This document shows positions 7,842 through 64,000 of a DNA stretch of 64,000 nucleotides, piece by piece. Source of the stretch: Gracilinanus agilis (Eukaryota); contig NC_058130.1 in NCBI RefSeq assembly GCF_016433145.1, positions 704,164,639 to 704,228,638 of the forward strand, in the 5' to 3' direction. How positions within the stretch are numbered: position 1 is the stretch's first letter; the number at the start of each line of letters is the position of its first letter. The notes under the pieces were generated by a model that was not told the DNA's origin, ran no database searches, and saw only the letters and a list, made by a program, of their open reading frames with translations. A program made the translations under genes and the position numbers.

Positions 7842-7847
7842 TTTATT
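7842..7847 (-). terminator. Polyadenylation signal AATAAA of VPS28
   Basis: tttatt on the plus strand, about 100 nt past the VPS28 stop codon. Confidence 0.75.
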
Positions 7848-7944
7848 CTAGGCTCCTACCCACAAGTCAGGGATCCTAGCCCTATAATTCATGGTCCTGG
7901 CTCTCAAACTGCAGCCGAGTAGGATGGACCAAGAGCCTTGAGGC

Positions 7945-10900
7945 TTAGGCATGCAGAAAGCGGTTGAAGGCATTGTAGGCAGACTCCAAATCAAACAGCA
8001 TCTGTCGGACCTGAGAATCATCCAGCTCATCTGCAGCAGACATGCCACTCAGGGTCTGGAGCCTGTGGGAAAAGGAGAGGAGTCACTGGGAGGGGCAAAT
8101 CCCACACAGGCCTCAGAAACTGGACTTTCCCCCAGGATTCCTAACACTCTAGAGCTGTTAAAAATGGCCACATTTTTCTGGCTCTTCAGGATGCTGTTAA
8201 TAACTTGGAGATTCTCTGATGGCTTTCCCACAGACGGTCTTGTTTAGTCTCTCTTGCCAGTGACCAACCACTTCCAAGCCATCTCCCAGGGGGCACTCAC
8301 CACTGGCTGACTTTCTGTCGACCCTCAAAGTCAGGAGGCAAGTGGCTCATGCGGTTCATGGTCTCCATTAATTCTCGAAGATCAGGCTGGATCTGAAGGT
8401 ATTGTTCTCTTAGATTCCAGGAAGATTACTCTCCCTTACTTCCCTGCTCCCACCCAAACAGCCAAGCTTTATGAACATGTACAACACTCTGCTCAAAGTC
8501 TGTCTTGTAGAAGTGCCCTCCAGAGCCAAGCCCTCCCTCAATAAGAGCATTTCCTTCCATCACTTTCCCTCAGCCAGGAGGATAGACACCTCACCTCATC
8601 CATGGCACGGATTTCCAGACGGAGTTTATCCATCACAGTGATAAAGAGCTGAGGAGAGAATACAGACTTTAGGTATAGCTTTTCCAACCCTAACTGTCAG
8701 AGACTTGAAGGTACTCGAGGCAGAGCAGTTGTCTTCCCTCATATTAAAAACAAAGGTTCTAGCTATGTGACTCTGGGCAAGTCACTTAACCCCAATGGCC
8801 TAGCCCTCATTGCTCTTCTGCCTTAGAAGCAGTATCAATTCTAAGACAGAAGAGTTAAAATACAAAACAAAAACAAAAAGGTTAGGGATGTTCCAAATAT
8901 TTATTTCCTTTGAAAGTGCATTTGATTTTGCCATCTATTAACATATGCTTTTCCTCCCAACCTATTTGCATGTGCAGTCAATGTTTCCTTCTGGGTCTCA
9001 TCTAAACTTGTTTGTTCAAGCTCCAAGGTTTCCCCTTTGTTAAGGTTTTAATATGGTTCCTCTCCACACTTTTCATAAGCAGAGGCCTGGCTTGATCATC
9101 GTAGCCACAATCAGTATTTTTCAGGGCAGTTTTGCCAGAAGAGACAGCCTAGCTGTATCCACCCATTAAAGATTTGGAAGTGAAGAGAATCTAATGGAAA
9201 GCCAATATTTAGAAGGTGATGGAGAATCCTCTTTGTAGATGGACTGACTCATCAGTTATCTCAGCCTGAGATCAAGGATACCCCATTGTAATGCATTTTC
9301 ATATGGTTCCTGCACACTTTTCATAAGCAGAGGCCTGGCTTGATTGTCTCTGTCTTTCCAGAGCACTGCTTTGTCTTTTTGGTCTGTCCTTCTGGGTCAT
9401 CCTTCTCATGCCAGGCCCCACTTCTGATACTAGGTCCCTTGATGTACAAGGATCATAAGCCTTTTAGACTTGGAAGAAACCTGAGAGATGCTCTACTTCT
9501 ACCTCATTTATTTTAAAAGTCAGGGAACTACCAAAGTCTTTTCTCATCATTAAAATGTATGCAGGAATAAATTTTGTTTTGCCATAGGTTTACCATAACA
9601 TCATTCCAGACCAAATAATTAACATTTTAATTTTAGTAAGCATTTTCATGTTTTTTAAACAGTAACAGAATATGAAGGACATACCCTATCACTGCTAAAA
9701 GAATGTGAACTTCGAGAATTTGATGGGTAGGTCATTTTACATATGATAAATTATTATTTTAATTATGGATTATTTTGGAACTTGGACTTTTGAATACTTC
9801 CTTTAATTATTTTATCTTTACATTTATCTAGCTCTGTGAGGAGGAAGTTTGGGTTCTAAACTATTATGGTTTCACTATCTATTTCCTCCTTTCGACTCAT
9901 TTAACTTCCCAGGGAATACTACATCCACTTTTTGAGGTGAAATAACCATAAAGGAAGATTGAGCAACCAGCTGCTTAGCTATGGGAAGAAAGGGAATTCC
10001 AAAAGACATGTAGATGACTAAAGAACCTCAACATGACTATTCATCAGGTCAATGTTTCCTGAACTCATCTATTTCCTCTTCTTGGTATATATTACCTTCT
10101 ACTGACAATACTGCTTCCTCCACTAAATATCACCACATGCTCTACATGCTTCCTCCTCTGAATTCTAGACTTCTTCAGGAGAACTTTTCCTCATTTACAA
10201 CACTGTTTGGTTATTTAGTCCCATCTCCTTTTTACTTATACCTCAGTTCCTTCTGAATAAAGATTCCTCTTCCAGAATACTAGGATCTATACATAGTCAC
10301 ATTTATTTTACTCCATCACTATCTCTATGACTCCCTCCTTGTGATGCCATGCTTTGTGCTTTGTGCTTTGTAAACAGATATGAGGCCATGGGTTTTATTA
10401 CTGGTTCCTTTCCTGGAATCTCCTTTGAATTTGAAGGGATACTTCTTGTGGTCACTCTCTCTGGTCTCTAGTTGGTGGATTCATGCAAAAAGTTTTCTAC
10501 CAACCTACATGAACTGATGCAGAGTGAAATCAGAAGATCCAGGAGAACATTATACACAATAACTGAAACACTGTGGGACAATCAAATATAATTTACTTTA
10601 CTACTAAAAGCAATGCAATGATCCAGGATAATTCAGGGACTTATGAGAAAGAATGCTATCAACACCTAGAAAAAGAAATGTGGGAATAGAAATCCAGAAG
10701 AAAACATATGATTTATCACTTGACTATGTGGGTATATGATTTTGCATTTTGGTCTTAAATGATTATTACAAAAGTGAATAATATGGAAATAGATTTTGAG
10801 TGATAATATATGTATAACAAATGGAATTGCTTGTCAGCTCCCCGAGAGGGGAAGGAAAAGGGGAGAAAGACAACAAGAATCATGTAAACACAGAAAATAA

Positions 10901-10945
10901 AAAGTTTTCTACCTATCCTTTTCCTCTACAAGATGCCACATAAGG

Positions 10946-10982
<37 letters not shown>

Positions 10983-13900
10983 CGCGCGCACGTGTGTGTG
11001 TACATATATCAGCCCTAGTTAGATCTACTATTATCCCTGCAGGAAGTCTGTTAGTCCTGTATTTGTCCAGAAATCCAATCCCACTCTCAGACACTATCAT
11101 CTTAAACAGGTGATTAATTCCTAAGTCTGACGTTTTTCCTTTCCATTTATCCACAATTGGGATATAAAACTTCTTCAGTTTCTCGCATATGGCTAAAATC
11201 TTTAAAAATATTTTCTAGATCCTTTATGGTAGTATCACTTGTACTCTGAGACTTACCAGAAGTGGATAGTAGTTATCCATTTTGATAAGTCTTCAAAGGT
11301 TCTCTGGCTATGTTTGGAAGTAGCAGATATCTGTGTTTTATTATCAAGTCAAAGATAGCCACTTTAAAACCTCTCAGTAGGAAATCAGCAACTGCCACTA
11401 TTTATCTTTTCTTTCTTGGTTCTTTTCTAGAATATCCCTTATCTGGCAGCAAGCTTGGATCCAATTATCATTTCTTAAAGGGCAAATAGCTGCTTCCTCC
11501 TTGGAGAATCCAGTTTTTTCTTCTTCCAGAAAAGCTTTCCATCTGTTACTTAGATGTAAATGATCACTACTTCTCCTTCCTTTTTCCTTCTGTAGCCTGT
11601 TCTTCCTTTTAACCTCCCTCTTCAGATTCCTTTTAGTTTTCCTATTGAAATCCTTCCACTTTTAGAGAATAGTTTCTTCTCCAGAATAGCCTGGAGAATG
11701 GAGAAGAGGTCTTCCAGTTCCTTCATTTTCTCTTTTAGAAGAAAGACCAACCTGTACTTTGAACACAGGTCACTTGGCCAAGGCAGAAATATAGGTATTG
11801 CATACTTAATGCAGGGCACTAAAAAATTCTTCATGGTCTCTCAAATAACTGAAAGTTAGTACTCTTTTTTGTTCTTGCTAGAGGATTCCCCATCAGTCCT
11901 CCAGTCGAGTTCCTCTTGCCCCACTCTAATGGTGGCATATCCATGAGGCTGAGGAGATATGAGGTTCCTGTCTCTTAAGAGACCTGAGCCCATAGTGACT
12001 TGTCTTAAGGGGTAGGACTTACCGAGACAATGTCAGCAATACATCGGTTGAGGTTGCCCTTGTCATCCTTGATGGTGATTGGTCGGTCCTCCTTGATCCT
12101 CTCCATTGCTAGTGGGCAATCAAGCTGCCAGGGGAATGAGGAGATGTGAAGTTATGTCATATACCTGAAAAGAGCTCCAGCACCCAGGGGATAAAGTCCA
12201 TCCACTTGTAAAGAAAGCTCAAGAGCAGGGGCAAGGGCCAAAGTACCCTGGGGCACCCTCATCAGTGGGTGACTCACACGGAATTTTCGGCAGAACTCAT
12301 CAATGGAACTGATTTCTGAGCCTTGCACCTGCTTGAAGGCGGCTTTGTACTGGACCAAGAGTCGGGAACAGGCTGCAGTGTACCTGTGGAGAAGAAAGCC
12401 TCAGCATGAGCCATGACCTACACCTTTACCTAAGACAGAGTTACAAGAATTTCTGGCTCTCTAAGATCAGAGTCCAGTCCAGAATAGAGATGGACTTAGG
12501 TCTTAAAAGATCAAGGTACAACCAAGAGATTAATTTAAGGAAAAAGAACTTATGCCAAGGTAAGAGAAATGCATGGTTCATAGCTGGAATAACCCTTAGC
12601 AATCAGCTAGTCTCATTCCTTTATATCACAAAGGAAAAAGCAAAGTCTCAGATAAAAGATTTCCTCAAGGGTACATAGCCAGTACCATTTAGTAGGTAGC
12701 AGAGATAGGATTCAAACCCAGATTTCAAACCTTTAAGTCTCCAATGCCTATACTCCCCTACTAGCACTTTCATATTTTGTAAATCTTTTATCACATAGTG
12801 CTTTGTAATGTTATTATTTATATGGTAGGAAGAACACCAGATTTGAAGTCATAATATATGGGTTCCACTTCTGACTTTGCTACTTGACTTCGTGATCTGA
12901 ACAAGTTTAACTCTGGGCCTCAGTTTCCTCATTTGTAAAATGGGGATAAAAAGAACTATCCTACGTATTTCATTCTATTGTTTTGAAGATCAAATGAAAT
13001 AAAGGATGTAAAGACACACACACCATTAAACACTATATAAATGCCAGCCATCATCATTTTTACCCCTTTCTAGACTGTAAACCCCACTGATGATAGGGGT
13101 CATGTCATTCACCCATTCAGTAGACATAAGTGAAGACAATATGCAAAGCAGTAAAACATGATCCCTGCCCTTAAGAAGCTTTCAAAATAGTTATGTTAAA
13201 TGTAACAGAAAATAGTATAGGACAAGTACATTAGGGTGCTACAAAACCCAGTGTGAATGAAACCTGAGGGAAAAGTTCATTATTGGCCAGGAGAATCAAG
13301 GATGATTTCAAAAAAGAGGTAATGTTTAAATGGAGCTTTTTAGAGGATCAGAGTTCTCATCAGTTCACTGGTTTAGAAGTGAAAAGCATCTTATAAGCCT
13401 TCTAGTTTAACATATTCCCACTCCCAATTTTATAGAGGAAATTGAGGCTTAGAAGAATGATCTCTTAATGAAGGTCATAAGCATTGTGAGGGACAACAGC
13501 TGAAATCTAAACTGAGAACCTCCAAATGCAATAATGTCTCCACTATATCACACAGCCCAAAATAATTTTCTTCTTTCTATACTCTTCAACACAGCCTGGC
13601 AATATGGCCTTCCTTATAACAGAGACTCAAAACAGAACTGTAGAGCTGGAAGGAAACTTAAAGGGGGACATTTCAACACATGTAGCAAATTTGATCCTGC
13701 ATATAACAGCATCTTAATGGTTTTAAAAATTAGAATGTTATGGAAAGAGGGACAGCTAGGTGGCACAGGAGTTGGAGAGCCAGGCCTGGAATTAGGAGAC
13801 CTGGGTCTAAATATGGACCAAGACACTTCCTGCCTGTATGGTCCTGGGCAAATCACCTAAATCCATTTGCCTAGTCTTTGCCCTTCAGTCTTAGAGTTGT

Positions 13901-15790
13901 TACTAAGGCAGAAAAGGTTTTTTGTTGTTTTTTTTTAAAATAAATGTAAAGAAAGAAAGAAAGAATTTAATGAAAACAACAACAAAAACAACAAAACCAT
14001 CAAGTTAAGAGTTAGGAAATCTGAGTTCTACTCCCAGTTGTATCACTGACTTGGTGTTTGACTTTGGCTAGGCCCTAGCTTTGTCTGAATTTTCCCTTAT
14101 CTACAACAGTCAGGAATACTGGTCTAAGTAAGTAACCAATAGGGTCCCTTCCAATTCTAAATGTTTTAATGATTCTGTGAATCTAATAGGAACAACAGAA
14201 TAAGAATAAAAAGTAGACCAGTCTTGGAATTTGTTTGGAACATTAAAAAACCTAGTCTACTTTGACTTTAACCCTGGTATGGTTTGGAGTTAGCAATATT
14301 TCCACAACTAGAGGAGTCTTCCTAGTCACCACTTCCTAGATCTACCTTATGTCTTTATACATAGAAACAGGTAGTGATGGAGAGTATAAGTCAGCTATTC
14401 AATCACAGAATTTCAGAGTATCCAGAAAACCAAAAACTATACCTAGAAACCAAGTCAAATGTCAAAGGTACCCTTCTTCCTTGCCTTCTTTTCCACCCCC
14501 CCAACTGTCCCTTCCGTAAGGACACTCACTCATTAGGGGTGACACAGTCCTTGATGTATGCCTTCTCCAGGGCTTGCATCGTCTTCACCACAGCAAATAA
14601 CTCTGCCATGTTGTCATACCTAAAGGTGTGGACCTGGTTAATCAAGTTGGTAGTTCCCAGGTTTAAGAAGCATGTTACTCCACCCTTCTCCTATGACCAG
14701 CCATGACTACATGACCACAAGCTACCCTAGACTGCAATGCTGAAGGCTCATAAGAAAGAAATGTCCACAGATCTCCAGGTAATGGTAACCACAGAGAGCC
14801 AAGGAGATAAGAGTAGGATTAGGGGAGCAGTGATTTCTTAACATTTCAATACTACCCAACTCAAGGAATAGAGATCAGCAGTTATAGCCAAGTCCACTGA
14901 GATTCTCTCCAGGGTTCTCCAAGTACCCTTTTGTAATTGCAACCAGCCCTAGCCTTCAATGGCCTCAAGGATGCAACAGAGCATGACCCTCAGTGATTTG
15001 TCTGGAGATGACCAACAGAAGGGAAGGCTCTAATGTGGTGGGGACCCTCCCCATCCCCACCCTCCTTCAATAAGGCCTTCTTCTTTCTCCATGTTCTCTT
15101 AGGGACTCACTTCTCTCTTTCCCGGGCATTCTTGTACAGCTTCACTTCCTGCAGGAGAGAAAAGAGAACCTTTCTAAGCTCAGTCTTATTAAACAAGAGG
15201 CAAACCCAGAGCCCATTTTATTTAGGCCTACAGAAATATGTAGCTGGCAGTTGATAAGATGGCTCACTCTCAGACTCTCTCCTCTCTTCCTACCAAAGGA
15301 TGAGGGGGATGCACCTGGGGAGGAGGGGAGAGGAGGCAGGGACTGAGGCTAATGGGGACATTTGAGGAATCCCCCCAACAGAAGGTAGCACTCACCTCAT
15401 ACAGCTCGGGCTTATTCCCAGGGGCTGAAAACAAAGAAAATAGTAGACCAAGTCTCCATTCTTAGCTACTATCTCCAGCCGGCCCGCCCCCTATTCTCTG
15501 TAGGTGCTCCTTAAATAAACACGAAGTCTTCGCCTGGTACACCCTGAACTCAGCTCTCTACCTCTGGGGGTGGGGGGTGTCCACAGTAGAGGAAGCCTGA
15601 GGCAGCGCCCCACCCCCTCCCTTAGGCCCGGGTTCCAGGCGCCCCCTGCAGGTGGTCCCCCTGCAGATGGTGCCCCAGCTTCCCTCTCACTCCCCCAGCC
15701 TCTCTCGGAGAGCGCTCCCGCTTGCCTCCCCGTCTTGGCGGTAGGTCACTCACCTCCCATTCCGGGATTGGCAGGGATTCCATGAAACAT
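7945..15790 (-). CDS. VPS28: ESCRT-I subunit VPS28, complete 9-exon CDS (666 nt, 221 aa)
   Basis: Coding exons (minus): 15754-15790, 15396-15424, 15111-15148, 14530-14619, 12278-12383, 12023-12124, 8595-8648, 8301-8392, 7945-8062. All introns are GT-AG. Translation [34 protein letters not shown]...[57 protein letters not shown]...[14 protein letters not shown](TAA) is nearly identical to the mammalian VPS28 I recall. Confidence 0.98.
10947..11008. repeat. (TG)17 microsatellite plus alternating purine-pyrimidine tract
   Basis: (TG)17 at 10947-10980 followed by gcgcgcgcacgtgtgtgtgtacatatat. Confidence 0.95.
11010..11800 (-). mobile_element. CR1/L3 LINE ORF1 fossil in VPS28 intron
   Basis: Decayed frames give [30 protein letters not shown] (CR1 ORF1 zinc-finger/leucine-zipper-like), then [10 protein letters not shown]...[10 protein letters not shown] and [13 protein letters not shown]...VDLTRA (SGNH esterase-like blocks). 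Confidence 0.7.
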
Positions 15791-16160: not shown

Positions 16161-16529
16161 GTGCAATTCTCTAGCTGGCACACCTGCCTGAGTGGTGGTC
16201 TTGAGTCCTGGGAAGAGATCCCTTATTGTATTAAGGCCTTTCGAAGACCATTTTTTGTTGTTGTTTGTTTCCATGCACAGAACTGAGTCAGCACGTGTCC
16301 TACAGCTGGCTCTCTCTATCCCATTTTACGTGGGGCTGGTTGTACTGGGCGGGACATTAGTTTGCTCCAAAATCTTCCATCCCAGGCCAGACCCTCAGGT
16401 CCACAGCAAAGGGTGATCGGGTCTTTTGTTTCCTTCCGTTTGAAATTGGACTAGGGGCAATTCCTGCCAGCACTAAATCTAGTCTCCTGAAAAAAATTTC
16501 AAAAGGCTCTCTTAGGAGGAGGTTTCTCC

Positions 16530-17254
16530 TGTCGACATGGAATCTAGAAACCCCAAACTTGTAGCCTAGTAAGATCTGATGAACCCCAAGTTTTAGGACA
16601 AGCTTGTAAGTTGGAGACCCCAAAGCTTGTACTTGTTCCCTGTTGCCATTAGAATCCACCCTGAAGGGAATCTCAAGCTAGCAGTTTCAGACTGAATAAT
16701 GGTCCCTAGGGTAAATGACTCTCATGCTTAGGTGGAGCTAGGTGTATGCTAAATACTCTCTTTGTCTTAAGTAGTCTTCCCCAAAGTATCAGAGACCTTC
16801 TTCTTTTCCCCCCCCCCCCCAAAGACCCACTCCAGGGAGGGGACCATCCTTTTAGTGTCCATCATGGGTAGCCCCTTCCCTCACACCCTAGCTCTGGGCT
16901 ATGATTCCTTTTCCTAGCTTGATTGTATCCTGTCAATATATTTTGAACACTCCCATTTCCTTGTAGACTGACTGTAATGTCAGTCATCTTTCCCTGCCCC
17001 TGGATCTCCCCAAATGGTATATAAGTTTCTCAAATTCTTTTGTTCCTTGGAATTGTCTGATCTAGCCAGGTTGCCTTTTCCAGGGGTCCGGGACCAGAGC
17101 AACTAGAGTTCAATCCTCAAACTCTGTGTAGGGATGTGGCCATGTGGGGCACAACTCTATGTAGAGACCTAACTCAGCCCTGTTATCCATTTCCTTAATT
17201 AAAGAATGGTTTTTCTGACTATTTAATAGTTCTGTGTTTTTTTCTGAGTCAACA
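16530..17254 (+). mobile_element. Solo ERV LTR (~725 bp)
   Basis: TGTCGA...TCAACA termini, TATATAA at 17018-17024, ATTAAA at 17198-17203, no PBS after the 3' end. Same family as the arms at 27798-28219. Confidence 0.8.
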
Positions 17255-18431
17255 CTAGTTACTAAAGAACAGGAGTTGAGTAACAAACACTTTTCTAGGA
17301 ACTTGGGGAGTGTGTGAACTTCACTTTGGGCTAGGAGGCAAATAGTGGAGAAGCCAGAGAGAAAGGTGATGAGACAATTTCTTGTTAAGTCTAAATGGTT
17401 ATTTTGTGCCAAAACAAGGGGAGTTGTCCCTGAAGAGCTTTTTTTTTTCTGATGGCTGAGGTTGGGAATATAGTGAGGCTGAAGAGAACACCTTTCTTCA
17501 ACTACTAGAATCTTCCTGAGATCCTGAACAAACTAAAATGGTCAACTCTGTTCCCAGAAGTTGTCATACACAATTACAATGAGATCTGAGATGACTAATG
17601 ATTTTTATAAATGAAATAGGTAAATAATTATGCCTGTTATTAATTTCATTGTTAACAAATTATATATTTAGTAACTTGAATATTTACAAAGCCCTACATC
17701 AAGGGATTTTATATATAAATGAGTGCCTACCAGTGGGAAAGGTTTCTCATCCTATGAAATAATATTCAGGGAACTGAGGTAGGGGACTTTGGACTTAAAT
17801 GGACTTTGAGATTTTGAAATTTCATTAATGAGGAAATAAAGAAACATACTCCTGAATTACCCCAGAGCCTAGGATAACTGTGGGAACAAGTAGCAGGCTC
17901 AAGGGTTGTTCTACTAATTCTATACACTACTTGGGCAACTGAAACTTGCCTATTACTCTCCTAGATTACCAGAGAGATTTGGGTCCTAGAAACACCAGTT
18001 CCCTAACAGGCTTTGTGGCTCCTTCAATTATTGGCAGTGAGTTGGGGAATGAGCAATAAACAATTGAGACAAGGATCAGCAAGAGGGTGATGTAGATAAA
18101 TAAAACCAGAAGCAGTGATGTACTTATTTTTTTTTTTAGACCCTTACCATTTGTCTTGGAGTCAATACCGTATATTGGTTCCAAGGCAGAAGAGTGGTAA
18201 GGGCTAGGCAATGGAGGTTAAGTGACTTGCCTAGGGTCACACAGCTAGGAAGTGTCTGAGGTCAAATTTGAACCTAGGACTTCCTGTCTTTAGGCCTGGC
18301 TCTCAATCCACTGAGCTATCCAGCTGCCCCCAGAAGCAGTGATTTATTGAGGATTTTAAAAGTCTAAGTCCATGGGTGGGTTTATTGGAGCTGGTCAGGT
18401 ATATAAATAGAGGAAAGAGAAACAATGCTGT

Positions 18432-18626
18432 TCAATGGCATTCAAAGAAAAATTTATGGTGGTGATTCAGCATGAAGGGAGGCAGGATACTGTTTGTAGG
18501 CCAACTGCTGGCTTAGGACTTGATGGTCAGTAAGTCTAAGTTTGCTACAACACAGCTGTAACTCTTGAAGCTGTGAGGTGATTTTACCCTATGTGCAGCT
18601 GCCCAAGGGCCCTTCGATGGAGCATC
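18432..18626 (-). pseudogene. TONSL: TONSL last exon (exon 26) remnant, disrupted
   Basis: GCSIEGPLGSCT*GKITSQLQELQLCCSKLRLTDHQVLSQ aligns without gaps to human [40 protein letters not shown]. TAG at 18589-18591 replaces Trp. The tail (FMLNHHHKFFFECH*, cf. CTLDHGSKLFFRRL*) is in another frame, consistent with 195 nt versus the expected 194. AATAAA at 18381-18386. Confidence 0.88.
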
Positions 18627-18634
18627 CTTTAAAG

Positions 18635-18840
18635 CAGTGATGGGAAAACTTTTTAAAAAGGGGGCCAAAGGAAAGGAAATGCTCATCTGTCAGTCTGTTT
18701 CTAAGGCAACTCTTTCGAAGTTTCATTGTATTGTATCCTACTCATTGTATTCATCAGATTAGGAATAATGTCACCCACTGCTGGATAGAACATTTCAGGA
18801 GACTGCATCTGACAGGTGGGCCATAGTTTGCCTGTCACTG
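18635..18840. mobile_element. hAT/Charlie-type MITE (206 bp)
   Basis: TIRs CAGTGATGGGAAAACT / AGTTTGCCTGTCACTG (13/16 match), MER58/Charlie-like terminal pattern. Left flank is the 8-mer CTTTAAAG; the right TSD copy is not seen because L1 sequence abuts. Confidence 0.8.
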
Positions 18841-20430
18841 AACTGGAGGAATTCCATGTGAACTGGAAAGATCTCCAGGAATTGATGCAGAGTGAAAGGA
18901 GCAGAACAGGGAGAACATTGTACACAGAGACTGATACATTATGGCACAATTGAATGTAATAGACTTTTCTACTAGCAGCAATGCAATGATCAGGACAATT
19001 CTGAGGGACTTATGAGAAAGAACCCTATCAATATCCAGAGAAAGAACTGTGGGAGTTGAAACACAGAAGAAAAACATATTATTGATCACATAGTTCAATG
19101 GGAATTGTAATGCAAGGTGGCTAACAGAAACTTTTTGCTTCTGTAATTTCTAACGGTCACAAAAAGTCAGTTAAACATCTTAGAATCTTCAGAAAGTCAG
19201 CTAGAACTTAAAGCTATAAATAGAGGTGAAGTTCCAACTGAGGGGGCTTTTGCCTTCTGACTTTTGCTTTTCGCTGGAGGCTTTTGCTTTGGCCTTTCTG
19301 CTTGCCTTTGCTTCGGCCTTGGCCTGTGCTTATTTTGTCTTGGGAAATTTGGACCTATCTCATTTCTCTGGACCTCTCCCTGATTTCCCATCTCCATCCC
19401 TCCCCTTCCCTGAATTTCCTTTGGGTCCTGAGTGGAAGGGAGGGCTTGGCGATTAGACATTGTGGATTTTAGTTTCTATAGTGTAAAATTGGAATTTGGG
19501 AGACGCCATCAATAATGGCTGGGGCGGCAGTTTTGAATTCTTACCGGCACGTGGTCTAATGGTTTTACCAGCATGGCCATGGCTTTAATTAAACTACTAA
19601 TTTATATTATTATATCAGTCTTTATCATTTTTTAATCTTAACAATAGACAAGTAGAGTATCCTCAAATAAGTTACCCCTAGATTTGATAAAGACTTTACT
19701 TAAAAGGCAGTCAAATCTTCCTGACTGGGAGAGCCGGACTCTCTCTGTCTAAACCTCTCCGCAACCCATCTGCCACCATTACCCTCTCCCTATCAGCAGT
19801 TAGAAAACCCTGAACCCCTCTGCCCTTCTGACTGACTCTGGTATTAATAAATCCCCTTGTTACCTATTCAAACCCTTTGGTGAATCAGTGAATTATTGTG
19901 TCGAAAATTAAATCAAGGGCTTAAGGGGAAGGAATCATTTTTCTTTTATTTCTTGAAAGAACTGGGGGCATCCATCTTGGCAGGAAGTACCTACCTCAAG
20001 ACTTCGACCAGCCATCAGTTTGACTGGCAGGGAGGGGCCCCCTGGACTCCTCCCTCAAGAGACTTGAGAAACTAATAAGAAAAACCCTCCAGCCAAACCT
20101 AAACATTTTCTTACTGGCCCTAGTTTCCTCCCTGTATCCTCTCTGTCTCAAGCCTCTGGGAATAAACCTGTTTGAGCTGCCCTCTCCTACATACCCCATT
20201 TCCTTTATCTCCTATATACCTTCCCTTATCTTCATTCTCCTCCAATCACCTTATAATTCCCTATAACCCCATTATCCTTCCTCACACCCAAACTGCATTT
20301 GTTAACCCACTCAGATAATTTATTTACTTTTTATAACAGAATATGATTGGGGATGTTGACATTAAATGATCACTCTATTGCAAATATTAATAATATGGAA
20401 ATAGGTTTTGAACAATGATACATGTAAACA
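18841..20430 (+). mobile_element. L1 3'-end fragment split by the LTR insertion (18841-19105 and 20339-20430)
   Basis: Marsupial L1 3' motifs (gaattgatgcagagtgaaaggagcagaac...atatgattggggatgttgac...aatatggaaataggttttg). Confidence 0.75.
19106..20338 (+). mobile_element. Composite ERV LTR insertion nested in an L1 3' fragment
   Basis: TG start, CA end, 4-bp TSD GAAT (19102-19105 / 20339-20342). L1 3'-end sequence resumes across it. An internal LTR-like end (cttaaca, 19643) and TATA box (ctataaatag) suggest two LTR units. Confidence 0.7.
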
Positions 20431-22869
20431 CTTCCCTCAAAAAGGTTATAATTTTTATATTGCCAAAGCAGCAATAGCTCTCCAGCCTCTTGACAGATTA
20501 GGATCCCTTGCCTCATGTGATTCTTTTTGTTTATTATATTTACCCCCAGAACATTTTTCCTACTATTTCCCATTTATAACAAATTATACATCATCAAAGT
20601 AAAAAAAAAAAAAACCTTCATTGTTATTGTGGAAACCCAGATGGTTCCATATGCAAAGACTAAAAAAAAGTATGGAACAGAAGAATAGGAAAGATTGTAT
20701 AGAAAGCAGCTAAGAAGGAGTGGAAAGAGTTGCACTGGAAAGGCAAAGGAAAATTAAACTCAACATTATTCAGCACCTACTATGTGCAAGGTCCAGCTTT
20801 TATCTCTATAAATGCTGAAAGTCAAAGAACAGAAAACAAGAAAGAAGATAGAAGACTACTGATGACAAACTTGTGTGCACTTATCAGTCTTGAAACAAGT
20901 ATATCACTTAGCTCATCACCTCATCACACAAAAGCTCTGCAATGATGTTACTGAATTAAGTAACTTCACTAGAAAACTAAGTAAATTAAGTAACTTCACT
21001 AGAAAAACAAATTTCTTGAGGGCAGGAACAAAGCCTAGACTTTTTTTTTTTCCAGTAATTAGTCATTAAGTACTTCCTACAAAATTGAACTTTGTACTTA
21101 TACCTTGTCTGGGAGACATTTTGAAAGAGTTGGTCCAATCCTGCCAATTTCACCTCCATATTTTTTGTACTCCCCACCCTTATTCTCATTGATGTTACTC
21201 TCTAACAGGCTCACATGATTACCATGTACTTATACACTGCTGTGGTTAGCCTCCCTCTGGCTCCTGCTCTAAACATAATCTTTTTATAAGGATCCTATCA
21301 CTTCCCTGCTCAAATATCTCTAATGCTTCCTTAACTGAGTCAAGTCCAAATTCCCCTGCCTGACAAGATCCTAGAAAATTTGGTGTCCACCCAACCTTCC
21401 CAAACCCCAGCCTTTTGATCAAGCTGTTTCCTTTTCCTGGAATGTTTTCCACCCATTTCTTCATCTGTTCAATAAGTATTTATCTCAAATGCCACTTTCT
21501 CTAGGAAGCCTTTCCTGGTCACCATTAATAAGAACTTTCCTCTTTAGGGTGGATCATATCACATCATGGGTACCTTTCTAATGCTGCTTTCACAAAGCTG
21601 TCTGTTATCTATGTTTGCCCCATTCCTCCACTAAACTATATTCTATATCTCCTGTCAGCATTAGCACAGTGCTTTCCAAGTACAAAATAGGTGCTTAATA
21701 CATATGGTCAGTGAAAGCTGAATAAAACCATTTGGAACACTACATAATAGATTCCCATTGCCTGCTGACTGACCTCCAAAGATCTTTCCTTGGTTGGACT
21801 GACCCTAAAAGCAATGAGGTGAGGCCTATTCTAGCCATGATCATGATAGGGATACTGAGACCTATTCCCTCTCATATCATGTCAGAGTTGGAAATGTCTT
21901 CAGAGATGGTCTAACTCAATGAGTCCTAGAGCAGTAATCCTCTTAAATAGAGCTACATGTAGTCATCCAGTCTTAGGAGAAGATCTTGAGTGCTGAGGAG
22001 CCAACATCCACTGCATCCATGGACAGATCTAATTGCTAGGACATTTTCCCAGATACCAAGTTTTAATTTGTTGCAATGAACTCCTACATTTTTTTTTTAA
22101 ACCCTTACCTTCCATCTTAGAATCAATACTGTGTATTGGCTCCAAGGCAGAAGAGTGGTAAAGCTAGGCAATGGGGGTAAAGTGACTTGCCCAGGGTCAC
22201 ACAGCTGGGAAATGTCTGAGGCCAGATTTGAACCTAGGACCTCCCATCTCTAGGCCTGGCTCTCAATCCACTGAGCTGTCCACTCCCACATTTTTTGATA
22301 CAGTATACCTGGTTTTGCTATCTTGCAACCAGGCATAAGAAATCACTATTCATTGGCTTCGATGGAAAAGACCTCTATTACCTGAAGACAGATAAAGTGC
22401 CCCCTCACTAACCCATCTTTGCTGCAAGCTAAGACCATTCCTATTTACTTTATTGATTTATTTATAAAACCCTTTCTTTTTGTCTTAGAATTGATGCTGT
22501 GTTTTAATTCTAAAGAAGAAGAGTGGTAAGAGTTAGGCAATAAGGGATGAATGACTTACCCAGGGTCACACAGGTAGGATATATCTGAGGCCAGATTGTA
22601 ACCCAGGACCACCCATCTCCAAGCCTGGCTCTCTATCCAATGAACCACCAAGCTGCCTTCATACTTACTTTAAATAATATTCAAAAGGATGCTCTTGAGG
22701 ATCTCAACCTTCCTGGTTTTTCTGCTTTCCAGTTTGGTACCCAGAACTGACACCTTTCTTAATTTATTATGATTGTCTTGTCTTACCTTTTCTGGTTGCC
22801 ACAGTAGGCTGCTGACTGATTCATACTGGATTTGCAGTGAGATCTTTTATTTTAAAACTTCTTTATAGC

Positions 22870-23060
22870 CACATTCCCCATATTTTGTTTATGAAGATGA
22901 TATTTGAACCCAAATGTAAGACTTTATATTTATTCCAATTAAATTCAAACTTATTAGACTCAGCCCAGTGTCCTAGCCTCTTAATAAATTGTTGGAACCT
23001 GATTCTGTGAACTAATGTGCTAATTATTCCTCCCTGCTTTGAAAAGCAAACATTAAGTTG
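22870..23060 (-). mobile_element. CR1/L3 ORF2 (RT C-terminal) fragment
   Basis: RIRFQQFIKRLGHWAESNKFEFNWNKYKVLHLGSN resembles the CR1 ORF2 motif RLEHWAESNKMKFNRDKCKVLHLG. L3 3' pieces also at ~48750-48980 and ~50990-51210. Confidence 0.75.
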
Positions 23061-24585
23061 GATCTTAAATACAGATGTGCAGAATACAGAGGCATAACAA
23101 TCCATTGCCTTACCTTCTTGGTCACCTGATTTTTTTTTAAGTGAGGTCATGTGATTGGGATTAGATCAGAGATCTCCAGTTAGCCTCTGATAACTGCCTT
23201 GGCTCACATTTACTTTTAATATTTCTTACAACAGAAGCTGCTAATGAGTCAATTAGAAATATTACATGTGGCTAATGAATAGAAATTTGGTGAAACAATG
23301 ATTACTAGGTATCTCAGGAATTAATTTCAGATTCCTAACTGGCAACATTCCTCTCTCCCACTAGGCTTCAAGGAAAGGAAAGTATAATGCCAGGGCTTTT
23401 TAATGCTATCTGTGGTTGATAAGATTTCTAAGAACAAATGAAAAGCTCAGTAAAGAAGTTTACTGATGAAAATAGGACCAGGTGATCTACTTGGACAGCA
23501 AATAACTAGTTGAATAATCCTAAGGAGACAATTTCCCAACATTTGGTTCCTCATCCTAAATCCCTTCTCCTAGGAAAGGAAGGGGATGAGGAGGAATTTG
23601 TTAAAACAAGGTTAGAAACCTTGATGACCAACTCTCTCAGAATCAAATTCTGGGTATGAATCATTCCCTTTGGGCCAAGCCAAGTAGAAATGCTACGTCC
23701 TCTCCACAGAGATCATAAGAAGGGATGTTAACCCCTACTTTTCAAATTCAATAGGATACCAAGTTCATTTTATTTAAATTTTTTTTTATTTTTTAGAAAA
23801 AAATTTTCCATGGTTACATGATTCATGTTCTTGTTCTCTCTCCCCCCACCTCCCCACACACTATAGCCAACATGCCTTTCCACTGGTTTCTTTATGTGTA
23901 ATCGATCAAGACCTATTTCCATATTATTGATAATTGCTCTAGGGTGGTCATTAAGAGTCCACCTCAATCCATGTGTTCAAGCAGTTGTTTTTCTTCTGTG
24001 TTTCCATTCCTATAGTTCTTCCTCTGCACTTGATCTTAGCCAAAAGGCAGAAAAGCAATTATAGTTCTTACTCTAAATGTGGGTAGCATTCTTTTCCATA
24101 AATCCCTCAGAATTGTCCAAGGTCATTACATTGCTGCTAGTACAGAAGTCCATTACATTCGATTTTGCCACAGTTTATCCGTCTCTGTGTACAATGATCT
24201 CCTGGTTCTGCTCCTTTCACTCTGCATCAGTTCCTGGAAGTCATTCCAGTTCACATGGAATTCCTCCAGTTCATTATTCCTTTGAGCACAATAGTATTCC
24301 ATCACCAACAAGGATACCAAGTTCAGAAGGTTATAGAATAAGCATTCAGGTTCCCCAATCTGCCCAAGATAACATGTTTCCTTCCTTTGAGTCTTCCCAC
24401 AGCTCCTAAAACAAGTTTTCCTTAATAGGTGGCATTTCTTTCACTTTTCTGATAGACTGCATCATATTTCATCACAAAATGGCATTATATCCATGTTTTG
24501 ATCAAATGAAAGTCGAGACATAAAATATCCCAACTAAATTGACTTGGAGTTGAGGGTAAAAAGTCAGGGTGACCAAAATTCTCAC

Positions 24586-24719
24586 CTGCAAGACCAAGGA
24601 AGTCAAGGCCAGAATTTCTTTCCTGAAGGGTTGACAGGATCTCTTCCAGGCTGGCACGGCTAATTTTAGGATTGGCAGTCAGATCCAGTGAGATTAATGA
24701 GGGGCAGATGGGAAGACAT
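24586..24719 (-). pseudogene. TONSL: TONSL exon 25 remnant (LRR), open frame, intact AG/GT
   Basis: 134 nt; (R)[44 protein letters not shown](G) vs human [46 protein letters not shown]; tttctag acceptor, gtgaga donor. Confidence 0.92.
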
Positions 24720-25769
24720 CTAGAAAGATAAGACAAAAGGAAGTGGGGAATAGATCCAGAAGGGAGAGAATAAGGAAGAAATTGATAGCCAACAACCACT
24801 TGCCCTTTACAGCCAACACAGTGCTAGGGAATCTTTTTCCACCCAATTCAACAAACATTAAGTTCCTATTGAGGAGCAACACCCTTAAGATAAAAAGATT
24901 AAAATAATACGAGGCAGAAAAAACTAGTTTTAGTCAGTCCTTGGAATTCAGGTATAGACAAGGTAAGCCCCATCATACCAAATACATTTATAATTCAGGA
25001 TGCTAAAAGAAGCTTCACTTTGTCTCTTCAAATAACCTCAAGAAGGTGGGGTAGGAGTCTTCCCTAATACAGTCTAGTTAAAGACAAAAGCTACTGGTTC
25101 CTAGGAGTTACTATAGAATCATATAACAGTCCAAGGGACCAGAAAGAGGAAAGCTTGTCCTCGTCTTTATCTATATAGCTCCTTGAATCTCCATGCTGTA
25201 ACTGATGTGTTCTGTCATGGGATCTGGGTAAACAGAAGTGTTTATAGGTGTTAATGACTAACAGGACTGTAGACAAAAAACAGAATGGTAAGACTGAAGG
25301 ACACCAGGACTCAGGTGAACAGATAAAGGAAGAAGGGGCTTAGGAGCCTAAGCAAAGAGGAGAGAAAAGAATGAAAACGGTGTTTGGACCGAAGATGAAA
25401 AGCTAGGTAAAATGAAGAAGAGAATTTGGGACAGTCAAGTAAAACAGAGGAGAGTGTGGGCTAGCAATAATTGGAATTGCACTTGGGTGGTCAGACAGAA
25501 GCATCTAGAACCATGAATTCATTAAGGCTTGCCTGGCCCTATGTCTGCCACCCTGGATTAACTATCTTCATGTTTGTGGTAAAGGATTGTTTGTGTTTTC
25601 AAGATACCTGGTATGAGAAGTTGTTTGCCTGCTGAGAGGGACACTGTAGGAAGCAAGGAAGTTGGGCTGTATTTTCTGGACTATCCCCTCATCTTGGCTA
25701 GTGTGATACTATAGGCAGGCAGCAGAATGTTTGTCCTAGGCATGGTAGAAGCCCTGGATCCCATGTTAC

Positions 25770-25843
25770 CTGGTCAGACTTCTTATGGCTTCATCATTCA
25801 GGTGGTTGCCAGACAGGGTCAGATGTGTCAGAGCACAGCCATC
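25770..25843 (-). pseudogene. TONSL: TONSL exon 24 remnant (LRR), open frame, intact AG/GT
   Basis: 74 nt; DGCALTHLTLSGNHLNDEAIRSLT(R) vs human [25 protein letters not shown]; phases join correctly to the neighbouring exons. Confidence 0.92.
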
Positions 25844-26288
25844 CTAGACACAAATAGCAGGAACTCAAGAAGGCACAAAGGAAAGGAGAGACACCAAAGA
25901 GTTTGTGACACGTGCCCAGAGAGTCAAAGTCAGATGAAGGCTCTGATTAAATGAACATCCCTGGACAAAAAGAGTCAAGTCCATGAGGTTTAAAAATGTA
26001 TGCCCTGAGTGTAGCTTAGTGGCTCAGAGGATAGAGAGCCAGACCTGGACAGGGGAGGTTTTGGGTTCAAATCAGGCTTCTGACACTTCCTACCTGTGTA
26101 AACCTGAGTAGGTCACTCAACCCCAATTGCCTAGCCCTCAATACATAATATTGAGTCTAAGACAAAGGGTGAGTAGTTAAAAAAAAAAAAAACACAACAA
26201 CACAGACTTATGCCCTATTGAGCCTGAGTGAGCCCTTATTCCTGACCACTATCTACCATTGGACCAGGACCTCAGAAATATGGAACTC

Positions 26289-26788
26289 NNNNNNNNNNNN
26301 NNNNNNNNNNNNNNNNNNNNNNNNNNNNNNNNNNNNNNNNNNNNNNNNNNNNNNNNNNNNNNNNNNNNNNNNNNNNNNNNNNNNNNNNNNNNNNNNNNNN
26401 NNNNNNNNNNNNNNNNNNNNNNNNNNNNNNNNNNNNNNNNNNNNNNNNNNNNNNNNNNNNNNNNNNNNNNNNNNNNNNNNNNNNNNNNNNNNNNNNNNNN
26501 NNNNNNNNNNNNNNNNNNNNNNNNNNNNNNNNNNNNNNNNNNNNNNNNNNNNNNNNNNNNNNNNNNNNNNNNNNNNNNNNNNNNNNNNNNNNNNNNNNNN
26601 NNNNNNNNNNNNNNNNNNNNNNNNNNNNNNNNNNNNNNNNNNNNNNNNNNNNNNNNNNNNNNNNNNNNNNNNNNNNNNNNNNNNNNNNNNNNNNNNNNNN
26701 NNNNNNNNNNNNNNNNNNNNNNNNNNNNNNNNNNNNNNNNNNNNNNNNNNNNNNNNNNNNNNNNNNNNNNNNNNNNNNNNNNNNNNNN
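26289..26788. other. 500-N assembly gap
   Basis: Run of 500 N; the same 47-mer occurs on both sides. Confidence 0.99.
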
Positions 26789-27797
26789 CTGACCACTATC
26801 TACCATTGGACCAGGACCTCAGAAATATGGAACTCCAGGCTCCTCAGGCAAAGCCACCTCTGTGGGTAGAGCTGGCATGTAGGATTCTGAAAGACAACAG
26901 ATTGCCAGGAGCACTTGAACTTGGGAGTCATAAAACATTATGGAAAAGGAATCAGAACAGTCTGAAACAGTTGGGTCAACAAGAATCTCAGCCTTGGAAA
27001 TCTGGGAGAGCCTATAGAGCTGGAAAACAAAGAGAAGAAAATCTAGGAGAGTTTTTAGGTTGAGGTATATGTATGTGGATCCCCTTTGAGTTTAAGCCTT
27101 TCCTCATAGGATCAAATGTTTGTTAAGTGCTTATGTAGCAATCCAGGTATACATTAATTGTGATATTATTTTAAGAAGTATTCAAAAACTTAACTCTTAT
27201 ACTGCTAATGATTGATCTCTGCAATCTTGAGTCAAATTGAACATCTACCCAGCCAAATCCCTAGCCCTTCCCTAAGGCTACACCCCAGAAGACTGGTCAG
27301 TTATCTCAGTCTCCTTACTTTTCCTGCAAAGATCAATTAACATAGGTATCAAACATCAGTAGATGCCTTAGGCCATATCCACTCTGGATCCCTTAGCTCT
27401 ACCTATTGTTTTTGGTTTTGGCAGTTTGCATTTTATGATGATTACCTCATAATGTTAATGTATCAAGCCACTGAGCTCTCCCCTTCCCCCCATACTGTTG
27501 TAACCCCAATAAAGGTGACAAGAAATGAGTTGGCAGAGAAGCTCCTAACCATCAGAGCTCCTAACCATGAAGCTCTTGACCACCAGAGCTTACTTGCTGT
27601 CTGTCTACCTTATGACAAAACTTTCTGTGTCTGCGTGTCTTTGTTCTCGCCTTATGTTCTCTTTCCATTAGTCCTTAACCGGTAACCCATTTTCACTCAG
27701 TCCTTGGTTCCCCTTTCTGAGTGTCCAACCCACTAGGAATCTTCGTGGAGTCGGTAGACAGCTTCATCTTAGCACAGTGTCTGGCACATAGGAGATA

Positions 27798-28219
27798 TGT
27801 CGATGTGGAATCTAGAGACCACAAACTTATGGCCAGTGAGATTTGATGAACCCCAAGTTTTAGGAATAGCTTGTAAGTTGGAGACCCCCAAAGCTTGTGA
27901 TCTGTTCCCAGTTCCCAGGAGAACCCACCCAGAAGGGAATCTCAGGCTAGCAGTTGCAGACTGAATAATGGACCCTAGAGTAAAAGCTAGGTGACTCTTT
28001 AGTGCAGTAGGCAGCATGTTAGTCTTGTAAGCTGAAGGTCCTGAGTTCCATCCCTGAAAGGGGGATGTGGTACAATGGGAGAACCTTCTAAGGCAAAAGA
28101 ATCACTGGGAACAGATCACAAACTTTGGGGGTCTCCAACTTACAAGCTATTCCTAAAACTTGGGGTTCATCAGATCTCATTAGGCCACAAGTTTGTGGTC
28201 TCTAGATTCCACATCGACA
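27798..28219. mobile_element. 422-bp palindromic LTR-derived insertion (two inward-facing LTR 5' ends around a tRNA copy)
   Basis: Arms 27798-27912 and 28104-28219 are inverted repeats (4 substitutions + 1 indel). Termini TG...CA, GATA duplicated on both flanks, inserted in an L2-like tail. Arms match the 5' end of the solo LTR at 16530. Confidence 0.9.
27993..28065 (+). tRNA. Degenerate tRNA-Met(elongator)-derived pseudogene
   Basis: gactctttagtgcagtaggcagcatgttagtcttgtaagctgaaggtcctgagttccatccctgaaagggggA matches vertebrate tRNA-Met-CAT at about 55/73 positions by eye. A box present, B box mutated (GTTCCATCC), anticodon position now TGT, acceptor stem poorly paired. Confidence 0.75.
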
Positions 28220-28740
28220 GATACTTAATCAAATCTTGTTCTCTTCTACCTTTCCCTCATTCCTAGTTACTCTCCTCTCACGAGTGCCAAGACCTCAAGA
28301 CTTCTTGGGAGAACAGGGAAATCATAACTGCTCATTTTTGTGTGGAGATGTGACAAAATTTTAATATGTAAAATTCTCCTCAGCATTTTAATTTTCAAGT
28401 TTTAGAATCCCATCATTCACACCCTACAAAAATATGACAGACTCAAGGTATAGTAACACTGTCTTTGTTTTTCATAGGGTTTCCAATGCTCACCTTTTCA
28501 AACTCAGATAAAGAGAGCTTTTTTTTTTCTGAATCCTTTTTTTCTTTTCTGTCCTAATGACTCAGCAAGTCAACAAGCCTTATTGGAGTGAGTACTATGT
28601 GATAGGCACTGTACTAAGTGTTGGTGATACAAGGAAAGGCCTTCATCTTGGAAAACAAAAGCAAAGGTATCCTTATGATTTTGCTAGTTTCTGCCCTGCC
28701 TGTTTTCTCCTCCCCTATCCCAAAAGGTTCTACTGCATAC

Positions 28741-28848
28741 CTGAGTCAGGTATCTGATCTTAGGCTCCATGAATCCCAAGTTGTTCCTGTTGATCATCAC
28801 TGAGCCAAGCTCCAGCCAAGCTAAGACATGGCGAGGCATGCTCTGAAG
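28741..28848 (-). pseudogene. TONSL: TONSL exon 23 remnant, 5'-truncated
   Basis: 36 codons LQSMPRHVLAWLELGSVMINRNNLGFMEPKIRYLTQ colinear with human [36 protein letters not shown]; donor gtatgc intact; the 5' part is replaced by an L1 poly(A) tail. Confidence 0.85.
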
Positions 28849-30029
28849 TTTTTAAATTTTTTATAACCTTTTTTTCATGATTTACAAATCTTTAACTAAT
28901 TAATTAACTGAGAATATTTTTCCATGGTTACATGATTCGCGTTCTTTCCTTCCTCTCCTCCCATCCCCCTCCCATGGCCAACGAGCAATTCCACTGGGTT
29001 TTACATAGGCACACTGTTATTCTTGAAATGACTCCCCAACCTGTGTCTATCCCCTCTTCCCCACTCCAAAATCCCATGGGGAATTCTCAAGGCTCAAATG
29101 AAGTTCTCTCACTTCTAGCCTACTTCCTCTAGAGAACTGTTCTGGGGAAATCATGTACCACATTCAAGGAACTGGTCATTCTCAAAATTCATAATCAGAT
29201 GCAGATGTGCCCTGCTTTTAAGCAAACCTGAGCTAGGAAAGTGTCATTTCATCCAACCTCACACACAGAGATCTCTGACCTCCTCTTCAATATACCTTAT
29301 CTAAGTTATGTTATCTAGGGAGTAGGGGAAAACACATGGTACAGTCAGCTAAATCACAGGTGTCAGTAAAACACTAACATTATCTATGTCCTATTGAATT
29401 TTTATTTACTTTGTTAATTCTTTTCCAATTATACATTAATCTGGTCCAGACTACACTGAGGAGTGTTGCCTGCCATGTGTTTGACACCTCTGGCCTAAAC
29501 AATGAATCTGCAATCAAAGGACTTAAGTCTGAGACCCAGTTTTGTTATTTACTACCTGGATGACCTTGAGTAGTTTACTTGATCAAAGATTGCTTCTTCC
29601 TCTGTCAAATGATGGGTGTGTACGAGATGATCACTAATGGCCCTTACAGATCTATATGCAATGATACTATGTGGTCATGCAACCTCTTAGCAAACTGCTC
29701 TGGTGATACAGAAGTAACATTTCCTGTCCAAGTATCCCTCTCTACTTTAGAAAAGTAATAATTTAAAATTTAGACAGACAGACTTTGCACTGGCTGCCTC
29801 CCTCAAGCCCTACCTTTTTCCATCTGAAGTTTTTCCTGATACTACCAATTGCTCATGTCCTCCCTGCCTCCCTTGTATTTATTCTGACTATATTTATTCT
29901 GTATATACTTATATAGTTTCTTGTTCTCTCCCTGTTCAGATATATGTATATACTTATATAGTTTCTTGTTCTCTCCCTGTTCAGATATAAGCTCCCAGAG
30001 TTGGGATTGTTCCTTATTTGTATTTCTAT

Positions 30030-43628: not shown

Positions 43629-43629
<1 letters not shown>

Positions 43630-43673: not shown

Positions 43674-43675
<2 letters not shown>

Positions 43676-43779: not shown

Positions 43780-44340
43780 GCGACTCTCCCAGAGTCACAC
43801 AGCACCAGGCTGCTGCTGAAGCGACCCCGAACCGGCCAAGGTGAGATAAGGACTTTTTCACTGAATAGTGGCGTGGAGGGAGGAGGCCGCGCCCTCCACC
43901 CACCCCCCGCCCAGGGGAGTATCCCGCACAGCGTCTTCAACAGCACGGTAACGCCAAAGCGCACGCACCGCGGGGAGGAAGTAGAAGATCTACAGCCCCG
44001 CAGTTCTCCGGTCTTTGCGCCTGCGCGCCCGCAGGGTGCTGATAGGGCGTGGATGGGAGGAGTGGAAGAGGTGGGGAGGCAGCTCCAGCGCCGGAACTCT
44101 TGAGCAGGAGGTCCGCGGTTCGACCGGAACGTTTTTTTGGCCGTCCTGGAGCCTGTTCTCTTCCACCTCCTCTCTTCTCCCCATCCTACCTCCGCGAGCC
44201 GATGTGCCGCGGCCGGTGCGCGCCGTGGGGAGAACGCGTGAGGCTGCGGGAGGAGGCGGAGGAGGTGGCGCGCGACACAGGTGGGGGAGGGCAGAGAATG
44301 TTAGGGATTAGGGGGGTCTGGGTGCGGGGAAAAAATGAGG
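43780..44340 (+). promoter_or_regulatory. CpG-island promoter and probable non-coding exon 1 of CPSF1
   Basis: CpG-rich, 2.4 kb upstream of the ATG exon. NRF1-like GCGCCTGCGC near 44016-44025 and two ETS-like CCGGAA cores. Candidate exon-1 donors at 44216 (GTGCGC) or 44238 (GTGAGG). Confidence 0.8.
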
Positions 44341-46699: not shown

Positions 46700-63966
<17,267 letters not shown>

Positions 63967-64000
63967 GTGAGTATAAATGACTTTTCCCCACAATATTGAC

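Follow-up and report, generated by a model that had tools for sequence, protein, structure and literature searches.

The 3′ end of TONSL in Gracilinanus agilis lies in an inverted assembly block that ends at a scaffold join and carries two disabling changes in its last exon

A 64,000-nt stretch of the genome of the marsupial Gracilinanus agilis (contig NC_058130.1, positions 704,164,639 to 704,228,638; here called the window) was examined for its content of TONSL, the gene of the tonsoku-like protein. The stretch is part of an 801-Mb scaffold of assembly GCA_016433145.1. It was searched by tblastn with 14 TONSL orthologues, including those of five marsupials, and the 1288-aa G. agilis model. 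Nine TONSL proteins had been collected by phmmer with the open reading frame (ORF) of exon 25, a query that retrieves full-length TONSL proteins, and the five marsupial TONSL proteins were then added. The window yielded only four matches, which lie collinearly on the minus strand (28845-28741, 25843-25769, 24727-24584, and 18633-18435), with per-exon E-values of 1e-8 to 1e-22 for the five marsupial TONSL proteins. On the minus strand these matches represent: (i) a partial, diverged second copy of exon 23 (28741..28848); (ii) an intact exon 24 between AG/GT sites (25770..25843), encoding DGCALTHLTLSGNHLNDEAIRSLT plus the two first bases of an Arg codon that is finished in exon 25, and 96% identical to Monodelphis; (iii) an intact exon 25, again between AG/GT sites (24586..24719, CLPICPSL...GLDFLGLA), with no lineage-specific changes; and (iv) the coding part of exon 26 (18432..18626), which carries a TAG and a frameshift. 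An AATAAA polyadenylation signal follows at 18381..18386, about 50 nt past the ancestral stop. Every junction between the exon-23 copy and exon 26 has its GT and AG, and the phases (0, 2, and 1) fit together. A processed pseudogene (retrocopy) was rejected on the grounds of three introns of 1-6 kb, canonical splice sites, and the ancestral, parental location. PDB and Pfam searches with single TONSL exon ORFs gave no matches, the exons being too short, and a literature search on TONSL in marsupials found nothing relevant. An initial annotation of this DNA had described four TONSL exons in correct order, phase, and orientation, with introns and hence not a retrocopy, located upstream of VPS28; it had further reported a 5′-truncated exon 23, a Trp-to-TAG change and a +1 frameshift in exon 26, and no exons 1 to 22 between 29 kb and the CPSF1 promoter. 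All of these points were borne out, the last for the window as a whole: residues 1-1205 of the G. agilis 1288-aa model had no match anywhere in it at E ≤ 10, and exons 1 to 22 were not found contiguous with the four exons on the same strand within it.

Both disabling changes of exon 26 fall within 115 nt. A TAG at 18591-18589 replaces a Trp shared by 90% or more of the 22 vertebrate TONSL sequences compared, and a C run at 18480-18477 has one extra C, giving a +1 frameshift ahead of the conserved HHHKFFFECH* tail. The shifted frame ends at a TAA (18456-18454) and the ancestral frame at a TGA (18434-18432), and with the TAG and the extra C no ORF was found to reach the conserved ...HHKLFF... 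end. The stop lies within a hexamer, TAGGGT (18586-18591), for which the orthologues imply TGG GAY/GAR; the difference is a clustered change made up of a pair of transitions separated by 3 nt, one turning Trp into the stop and the other Asp/Glu into Gly. As a control on local base quality, VPS28 was found to be annotated undamaged at its full 221 aa. The CPSF1 exon ORFs also appeared undisturbed by eye, without orthologue alignment, so the control on the local error rate depends mainly on VPS28.

Unique residue changes were counted against six other marsupial sequences over 168 positions. The window lineage displayed 7 in the 35 codons of the exon-23 piece, 1 in the 25 codons of exon 24, none in the 45 codons of exon 25, and 7 in the 63 codons of exon 26, the stop included; Monodelphis displayed 6, 0, 3, and 6 over the same four regions. 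The totals are equal at 15 each, and thus the TONSL 3′ region was not found to change faster here than in an orthologue where it is functional. Within the window lineage the changes are unevenly spread, with 1 in 70 codons for exons 24 and 25 compared with 7 in 35 for the exon-23 piece (Fisher P = 0.0018). If evolution had been neutral throughout, at a rate of 2.5e-9 substitutions per site per year, the exon-23 piece would be at least 17 million years (My) old, with a point estimate of 36 My, and exons 24 and 25 would have been released for at most 12 My. The much greater divergence of the exon-23 piece implies that exons 24 and 25 were under selection long after the copy arose.

The exon-23 piece comprises the last 35-36 codons of that exon (LQSMPRH...YLTQ), as matched by tblastn, with a GT donor at 28740-28739. 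Full exon 23 presumably begins at GAQHLK and has 59 codons, judging from alternative gene models or isoforms in Monodelphis and whale, so that 35-36 of 59 codons are present. A complete exon 23 was found in XP_044540632.1, an annotated G. agilis protein; it has about one unique change, as read from the alignment, and the piece in the window is 78% identical to it (8 of 36 residues differ). A second, intact copy is thus known for the exon-23 piece, and no second copy of exons 24 to 26 was found among the annotated G. agilis proteins searched. Homology to exon 23 ends at an interspersed-repeat fragment (28849..29006), which sets an A-rich tract against the truncated exon and matches 31065-31187 and 23796-23889 at 77%; the missing 5′ third of the exon was not found past this repeat at 28.85-29.0 kb with E up to 50. 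From these alignments, the exon-23 piece appears to be an old, non-functional partial copy, reversed, in the SLC39A4-CPSF1 intergenic region, and it would be the only true duplicate remnant at the locus, the complete exon 23 sitting in XP_044540632.1. The initial annotation had called the whole 3′ region a decaying remnant. That description fits the exon-23 piece, which is a diverged duplicate, but not exons 24 to 26, which are the only annotated copy and have, in exons 24 and 25, the single change in 70 codons noted above.

Both pieces of TONSL are already present in the RefSeq annotation. A search with the exon-25 ORF returned one protein, XP_044540637.1 (114 aa, Gracilinanus agilis), a "tonsoku-like protein" that is identical, residue for residue, to the product obtained by splicing the window from an ATG at 28839-28837 in the exon-23 piece through exons 24 and 25 to the TAG; its annotated coding sequence (CDS) spans 10,251 nt and equals window positions 28839-18589. 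The other piece, XP_044540632.1, is the 1288-aa "tonsoku-like protein", found in the 90% cluster of Monodelphis TONSL and encoded on the same scaffold. It aligns with Monodelphis through complete exon 23 and then continues with 24 unrelated residues, exons 24 to 26 being absent. Searches with the TONSL C-terminus gave these two G. agilis proteins only. The 5′ model is completed by a terminal exon derived from a short interspersed nuclear element (SINE), and the 3′ model begins at an internal Met of the pseudo-exon; both are probably annotation artifacts of the assembly layout. The initial annotation had offered a relocated or duplicated functional TONSL as an explanation. This was not supported, as exons 1 to 23 lie on the same scaffold beside SLC39A4 and no intact copy was found among the annotated proteins.

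Gene order was then compared between the assembly and related genomes. The CDS of XP_044540632.1 spans 41.8 kb, and 3.2 kb farther on comes SLC39A4 (the 652-aa ZIP4), on the opposite strand and in convergent orientation. In Monodelphis and wombat, VPS28 lies 1.7 kb downstream of TONSL on the same strand, and the human order we take to be TONSL>VPS28>SLC39A4>CPSF1, all on one strand. The conserved position of VPS28 was also found in the window, where the gene is directly downstream of the TONSL 3′ exons on the same strand at a spacing of 2.6-2.8 kb; its start is 2,799 nt past the TAG in the window and in the G. agilis annotation alike. XP_044540632.1 and XP_044540637.1 would flank the block between them as neighbors, an adjacency that is weakly suggested by their accessions, which are five apart and leave room for the SLC39A4 isoforms and VPS28. 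Two new adjacencies are present in this layout: exon 23 neighbors SLC39A4 at its 3′ end, and the region upstream of CPSF1 neighbors the exon-23 copy. Together they are what would result from one inversion of exons 24 to 26, VPS28, and SLC39A4. Thus a block of about 50 kb, consisting of the remainder of intron 23, exons 24 to 26, VPS28, and SLC39A4, runs in the assembly in the opposite direction to that in Monodelphis, wombat, and human.

One edge of this block coincides with a scaffold join. The window contains a single run of N, at 26289-26788 and exactly 500 N long. This gap falls within intron 23, with the exon-23 piece (28.8 kb) on one side and exon 24 (25.8 kb) on the other; it interrupts no reading frame, and the orthologues have no exon between exons 23 and 24. 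The 47 nt on each side are identical (26242-26288 and 26789-26835), and this 47-mer is otherwise absent from the window; the join with its two 47-mers occupies 26242..26835. The G. agilis assembly was built from single-tube long fragment reads (stLFR) by Supernova 2.1.1, GapCloser, and 3D-DNA with Juicebox, and has a contig N50 of 57 kb, 8.25% N, and a BUSCO completeness of 88% (PMC8390783). The gap has exactly the form of a Supernova overlap within a 3D-DNA join. Supernova edges overlap by K-1 = 47, and the join size of 3D-DNA is 500 N. Contig ends with an exact 47-nt overlap indicate a shared node of the assembly graph, with little or no sequence missing. The join is the only one in the window and marks the block at its intron 23 edge; the other edge lies outside the window. 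Between the gap and the exon-23 copy, the intron (26789..28740, minus strand) holds a 119-nt inverted pair (27795-27912 and 28104-28222, 95% complementary, 191 nt apart), and a third copy of this element, at 87%, was found at 16529-16715 between the TONSL 3′ end and VPS28.

A second duplicated piece was detected on the CPSF1 side of the window. At 43784..43866 on the plus strand lies a SINE-derived paralogue (16 of 19 and 7 of 8 residues) of the terminal exon of XP_044540632.1, whose 24 aa are unrelated to TONSL. The paralogue contains a stop and a frame difference, and is located some 15 kb away from the exon-23 copy, about 1 kb ahead of the CPSF1 CpG island. The paralogue begins in the SINE core; other SINE copies of the window match over 27 nt only, at 85%, which makes it unlikely that the terminal exon of XP_044540632.1 is an ordinary SINE copy. 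This suggests that the stretch upstream of CPSF1 was duplicated beside SLC39A4. The last intron of XP_044540632.1 was estimated at 15-17 kb, from its 41.8-kb span compared with the 35.0 kb of Monodelphis (26 exons) minus 9.8 kb for exons 23 to 26 here, and the distance from the exon-23 piece to the paralogue in the window is 14.95 kb. One history that may account for these lengths is a fold-back duplication of the 15-kb CPSF1-upstream stretch with a 2-kb templated insert of TONSL intron 23 at its center. Such an event would have been neutral and intergenic, and would have left an inverted repeat of intron 23 flanking the block of TONSL 3′ exons, VPS28, and SLC39A4.

The consequences of a shortened TONSL were examined on a model of its C-terminal leucine-rich repeat (LRR) domain. 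AlphaFold2 was applied to the last 360 residues of Monodelphis TONSL with a 22-sequence alignment, and predicted a ribonuclease-inhibitor-type LRR horseshoe with eleven repeat strands (mean predicted local distance difference test score [pLDDT] 85, predicted template modeling score [pTM] 0.86; pLDDT 86-88 up to residue 322). To our knowledge, no structure of the TONSL LRR has been solved. In the model, exon 23 corresponds to residues 169-227 and exons 24 to 26 to residues 228-360, with the conserved Trp at 309. An end after exon 23 would remove four of the eleven modeled strands (234-236, 262-264, 290-295, and 316-322), while the TAG alone would remove the last modeled strand with the invariant L319, L321, and C322, the capping helices, and the conserved KLFF end. 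The LRR of TONSL binds MMS22L (PMC9409234), and mice into which a pathogenic TONSL variant was knocked in die as embryos (PMC13418528). With this binding role and the lethality in mouse, a fixed break of TONSL is unlikely a priori.

Exons 24 to 26 of the window are most probably the genuine 3′ end of G. agilis TONSL, in single copy among the annotated proteins, and the interpretation turns on why they are separated from exons 1 to 23. The reading we prefer, to which we give about an even chance, is that the block was placed back to front by Hi-C scaffolding and that the TONSL of the living animal is unbroken. The block would be flanked by an inverted repeat made up of the real intron 23 and its reversed copy, and the 47-mer would presumably occur in the real intron as well. 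With such flanks, perfect 47-nt overlaps result in either orientation, so that the graph cannot decide; the orientation of the block would have been ambiguous, and the Hi-C scaffolder would have joined it with 500 N exactly there. RefSeq would thus have split TONSL into one model of exons 1 to 23 with a spurious SINE-derived end and another of 114 aa. Among contigs from short reads, 3D-DNA mis-orients 4.3%, shorter ones more often, and genes are split as a result (PMC7672694). That the block edge lies at a Hi-C scaffold join, with exons 24 and 25 and all splice sites intact, favors mis-orientation, and the flip is more likely a scaffolding error than a true break of the gene. Several points weigh against a scaffolding error. 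Two disabling changes stand within 115 nt of exon 26 next to undamaged coding sequence, and local base quality around the TONSL exons seems good; the flip account leaves these lesions unexplained, and under it they must be either erroneous bases or a genuine loss of the last 52 residues that the animal tolerates. A reversed copy of breakpoint sequence at the far end of the block is also what a real inversion typically leaves behind. The 47-nt overlap would be expected just as well if the exon-23 copy and exon 24 were truly adjacent, a mis-orientation rate of 4.3% is low when set against accepting the assembly as it stands, and the left junction, at the 5′ locus, is read from gene tables rather than from DNA. 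The weighing set a high prior for artifact in flips that split genes against a likelihood ratio of perhaps 50 from the lesions, and was a matter of judgment, not of computation.

A real inversion, which we regard as rather unlikely, takes the assembly as given, with exon 24 linked to the exon-23 copy by the 47-nt overlap. Non-allelic homologous recombination would have taken place between the real copy and an old inverted duplicate of exon 23 and intron 23, the block would have flipped within roughly the last 10 My, and TONSL would now end after exon 23 while the orphaned exons 24 to 26 decay. The TAG and frameshift are what lost constraint is expected to produce and are its strongest point, especially with local base quality that otherwise looks good. 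Duplicated pieces from both block ends (exon 23 and the terminal-exon paralogue) bear witness to past rearrangement, and RefSeq has a complete 1288-aa model that does without exons 24 to 26. The price is the loss of modeled LRR residues 228-360, part of the MMS22L-binding domain, in a gene that is essential in mouse. Two events are also required, given that exons 24 and 25 are far better conserved than the exon-23 copy. This mismatch in age excludes a single inversion with duplication and leaves either no flip at all or one that took place recently between the two copies of exon 23/intron 23. A single-event inversion with a staggered break was rejected on this conservation and on the wrong orientation of the terminal-exon paralogue, and the idea that the whole block had recently been duplicated in inverted orientation and then collapsed was dropped because the exon-23 copies, differing at 8 of 36 residues, are too diverged to collapse. 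For the recent flip itself, the intact splice sites and near-perfect exons 24 and 25 limit the available time, and the boundary of the block is a Hi-C scaffold join. Should the gene instead be contiguous, its TAG could still be real, so that TONSL would lack its last 52 residues and the frameshift would have arisen later in the untranslated part. We consider this decidedly improbable, and count it as a share of the chance given to mis-orientation, not as an addition to it. Of the seven unique changes of exon 26, one is the stop itself and the other six, like the frameshift, come after the TAG; the roughly 82 codons before it have a single unique change, and no lesions were seen in neighboring coding sequence on the basis of VPS28. 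Against a real TAG stands the loss of the last LRR strand (L319, L321, and C322) and the KLFF end; moreover, Monodelphis has equally many changes there with its frame intact, so the clustering is not evidence of relaxed constraint. What probability remains is divided between more complex histories and a complete TONSL (exons 1 to 26) elsewhere in the genome, of which the exons here would be a decaying leftover after duplication or relocation. The latter would fit the exon 26 lesions and the truncated exon 23, and unannotated copies are possible. It is nonetheless very unlikely indeed, as neither of the two G. agilis proteins returned by the C-terminus searches is complete, the exons are in the ancestral position 2.6 kb upstream of VPS28, and exons 24 and 25 are undecayed. 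Taken over these readings, the chance that G. agilis lacks an intact TONSL C-terminus, through a real inversion (four LRR strands lost) or the TAG (last strand and cap lost), falls somewhat short of even, so that a TONSL without its last LRRs, the other option offered by the initial annotation, keeps a fair chance.

If the flip is a scaffolding error, as preferred here, the locus provides a worked example of how an inverted repeat combined with Hi-C scaffolding can present an essential gene as two RefSeq models and mimic decay, and XP_044540632.1 and XP_044540637.1 are to be flagged for merging. If the break or the stop is real, G. agilis would be a marsupial with a naturally truncated TONSL LRR, the domain that holds together the TONSL-MMS22L replication-fork repair complex. 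A real truncation would serve as a natural experiment on the extent of LRR that is required, and would lead one to ask whether the loss is compensated in a species that is short-lived and semelparous; in people, TONSL variants cause SPONASTRIME dysplasia. The exon 26 lesions are the only part able to make the TONSL finding important.

The remainder of the window was surveyed for neighboring features. The VPS28 coding region occupies 7945..15790 on the minus strand, from an ATG at 15790-15788 to a stop at 7947-7945, and matches the G. agilis annotation; a (CA)n/(TG)n microsatellite lies in one of its introns (10944-11001). No SLC39A4 exons were detected in window positions 1-7900 by Pfam on 17 ORFs, and the gene either lies beyond the window end or has first exons too weakly conserved for detection. 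On the other side, CPSF1 was identified from its ORFs on the plus strand, from an ATG at 46724 to the window end (46724..64000), and is transcribed away from the TONSL exons. It is preceded by a CpG-rich stretch at 43.5-46 kb, at the edge of which a second (CA)n/(TG)n microsatellite was found (43627-43678). The 15 kb between the exon-23 piece and the CPSF1 promoter contain repeats and an intronless ADP/ATP-translocase-like copy (37299-37999, minus strand; Pfam Mito_carr, E = 2.6e-30), which is spread over two frames and represents a frameshifted processed pseudogene. A 45-nt unit is present as an exact tandem duplication at 29900-29989.

The locus was compared with four known systems. It resembles marsupial TONSL (Monodelphis F7FJ56 / XP_007488854.1) in its last four coding exons, in their intron positions and phases, in a residue identity of 74-96% per exon, in a C-terminus modeled as an LRR horseshoe, and in its position just upstream of VPS28. 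It differs in the TAG, in the +1 frameshift, and in an exon 23 that is a truncated second copy; in addition, exons 1 to 23 of G. agilis are annotated as a separate gene across the inverted block. A processed pseudogene likewise has premature stops and frameshifts, and is unlike this locus with its introns and parental position. Drosophila inversions have inverted duplications at their breakpoints, which originate from staggered breaks or template switches, and a piece of exon 23 and intron 23 is similarly found at both ends of the block here in opposite orientation. The terminal-exon paralogue (43.8 kb), however, is in direct orientation and 15 kb from the junction, and the divergence of the exon-23 copy far exceeds the decay of exons 24 and 25, which a single event does not fit. 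With the orientation errors of 3D-DNA (PMC7672694), the locus shares a flipped block of about contig size, an edge of 500 N, and a gene split in two; what sets it apart is the diverged exon-23 copy on the flanking contig, the 47-nt overlap of the contig ends, and two disabling changes of a kind that a pure orientation error does not create.

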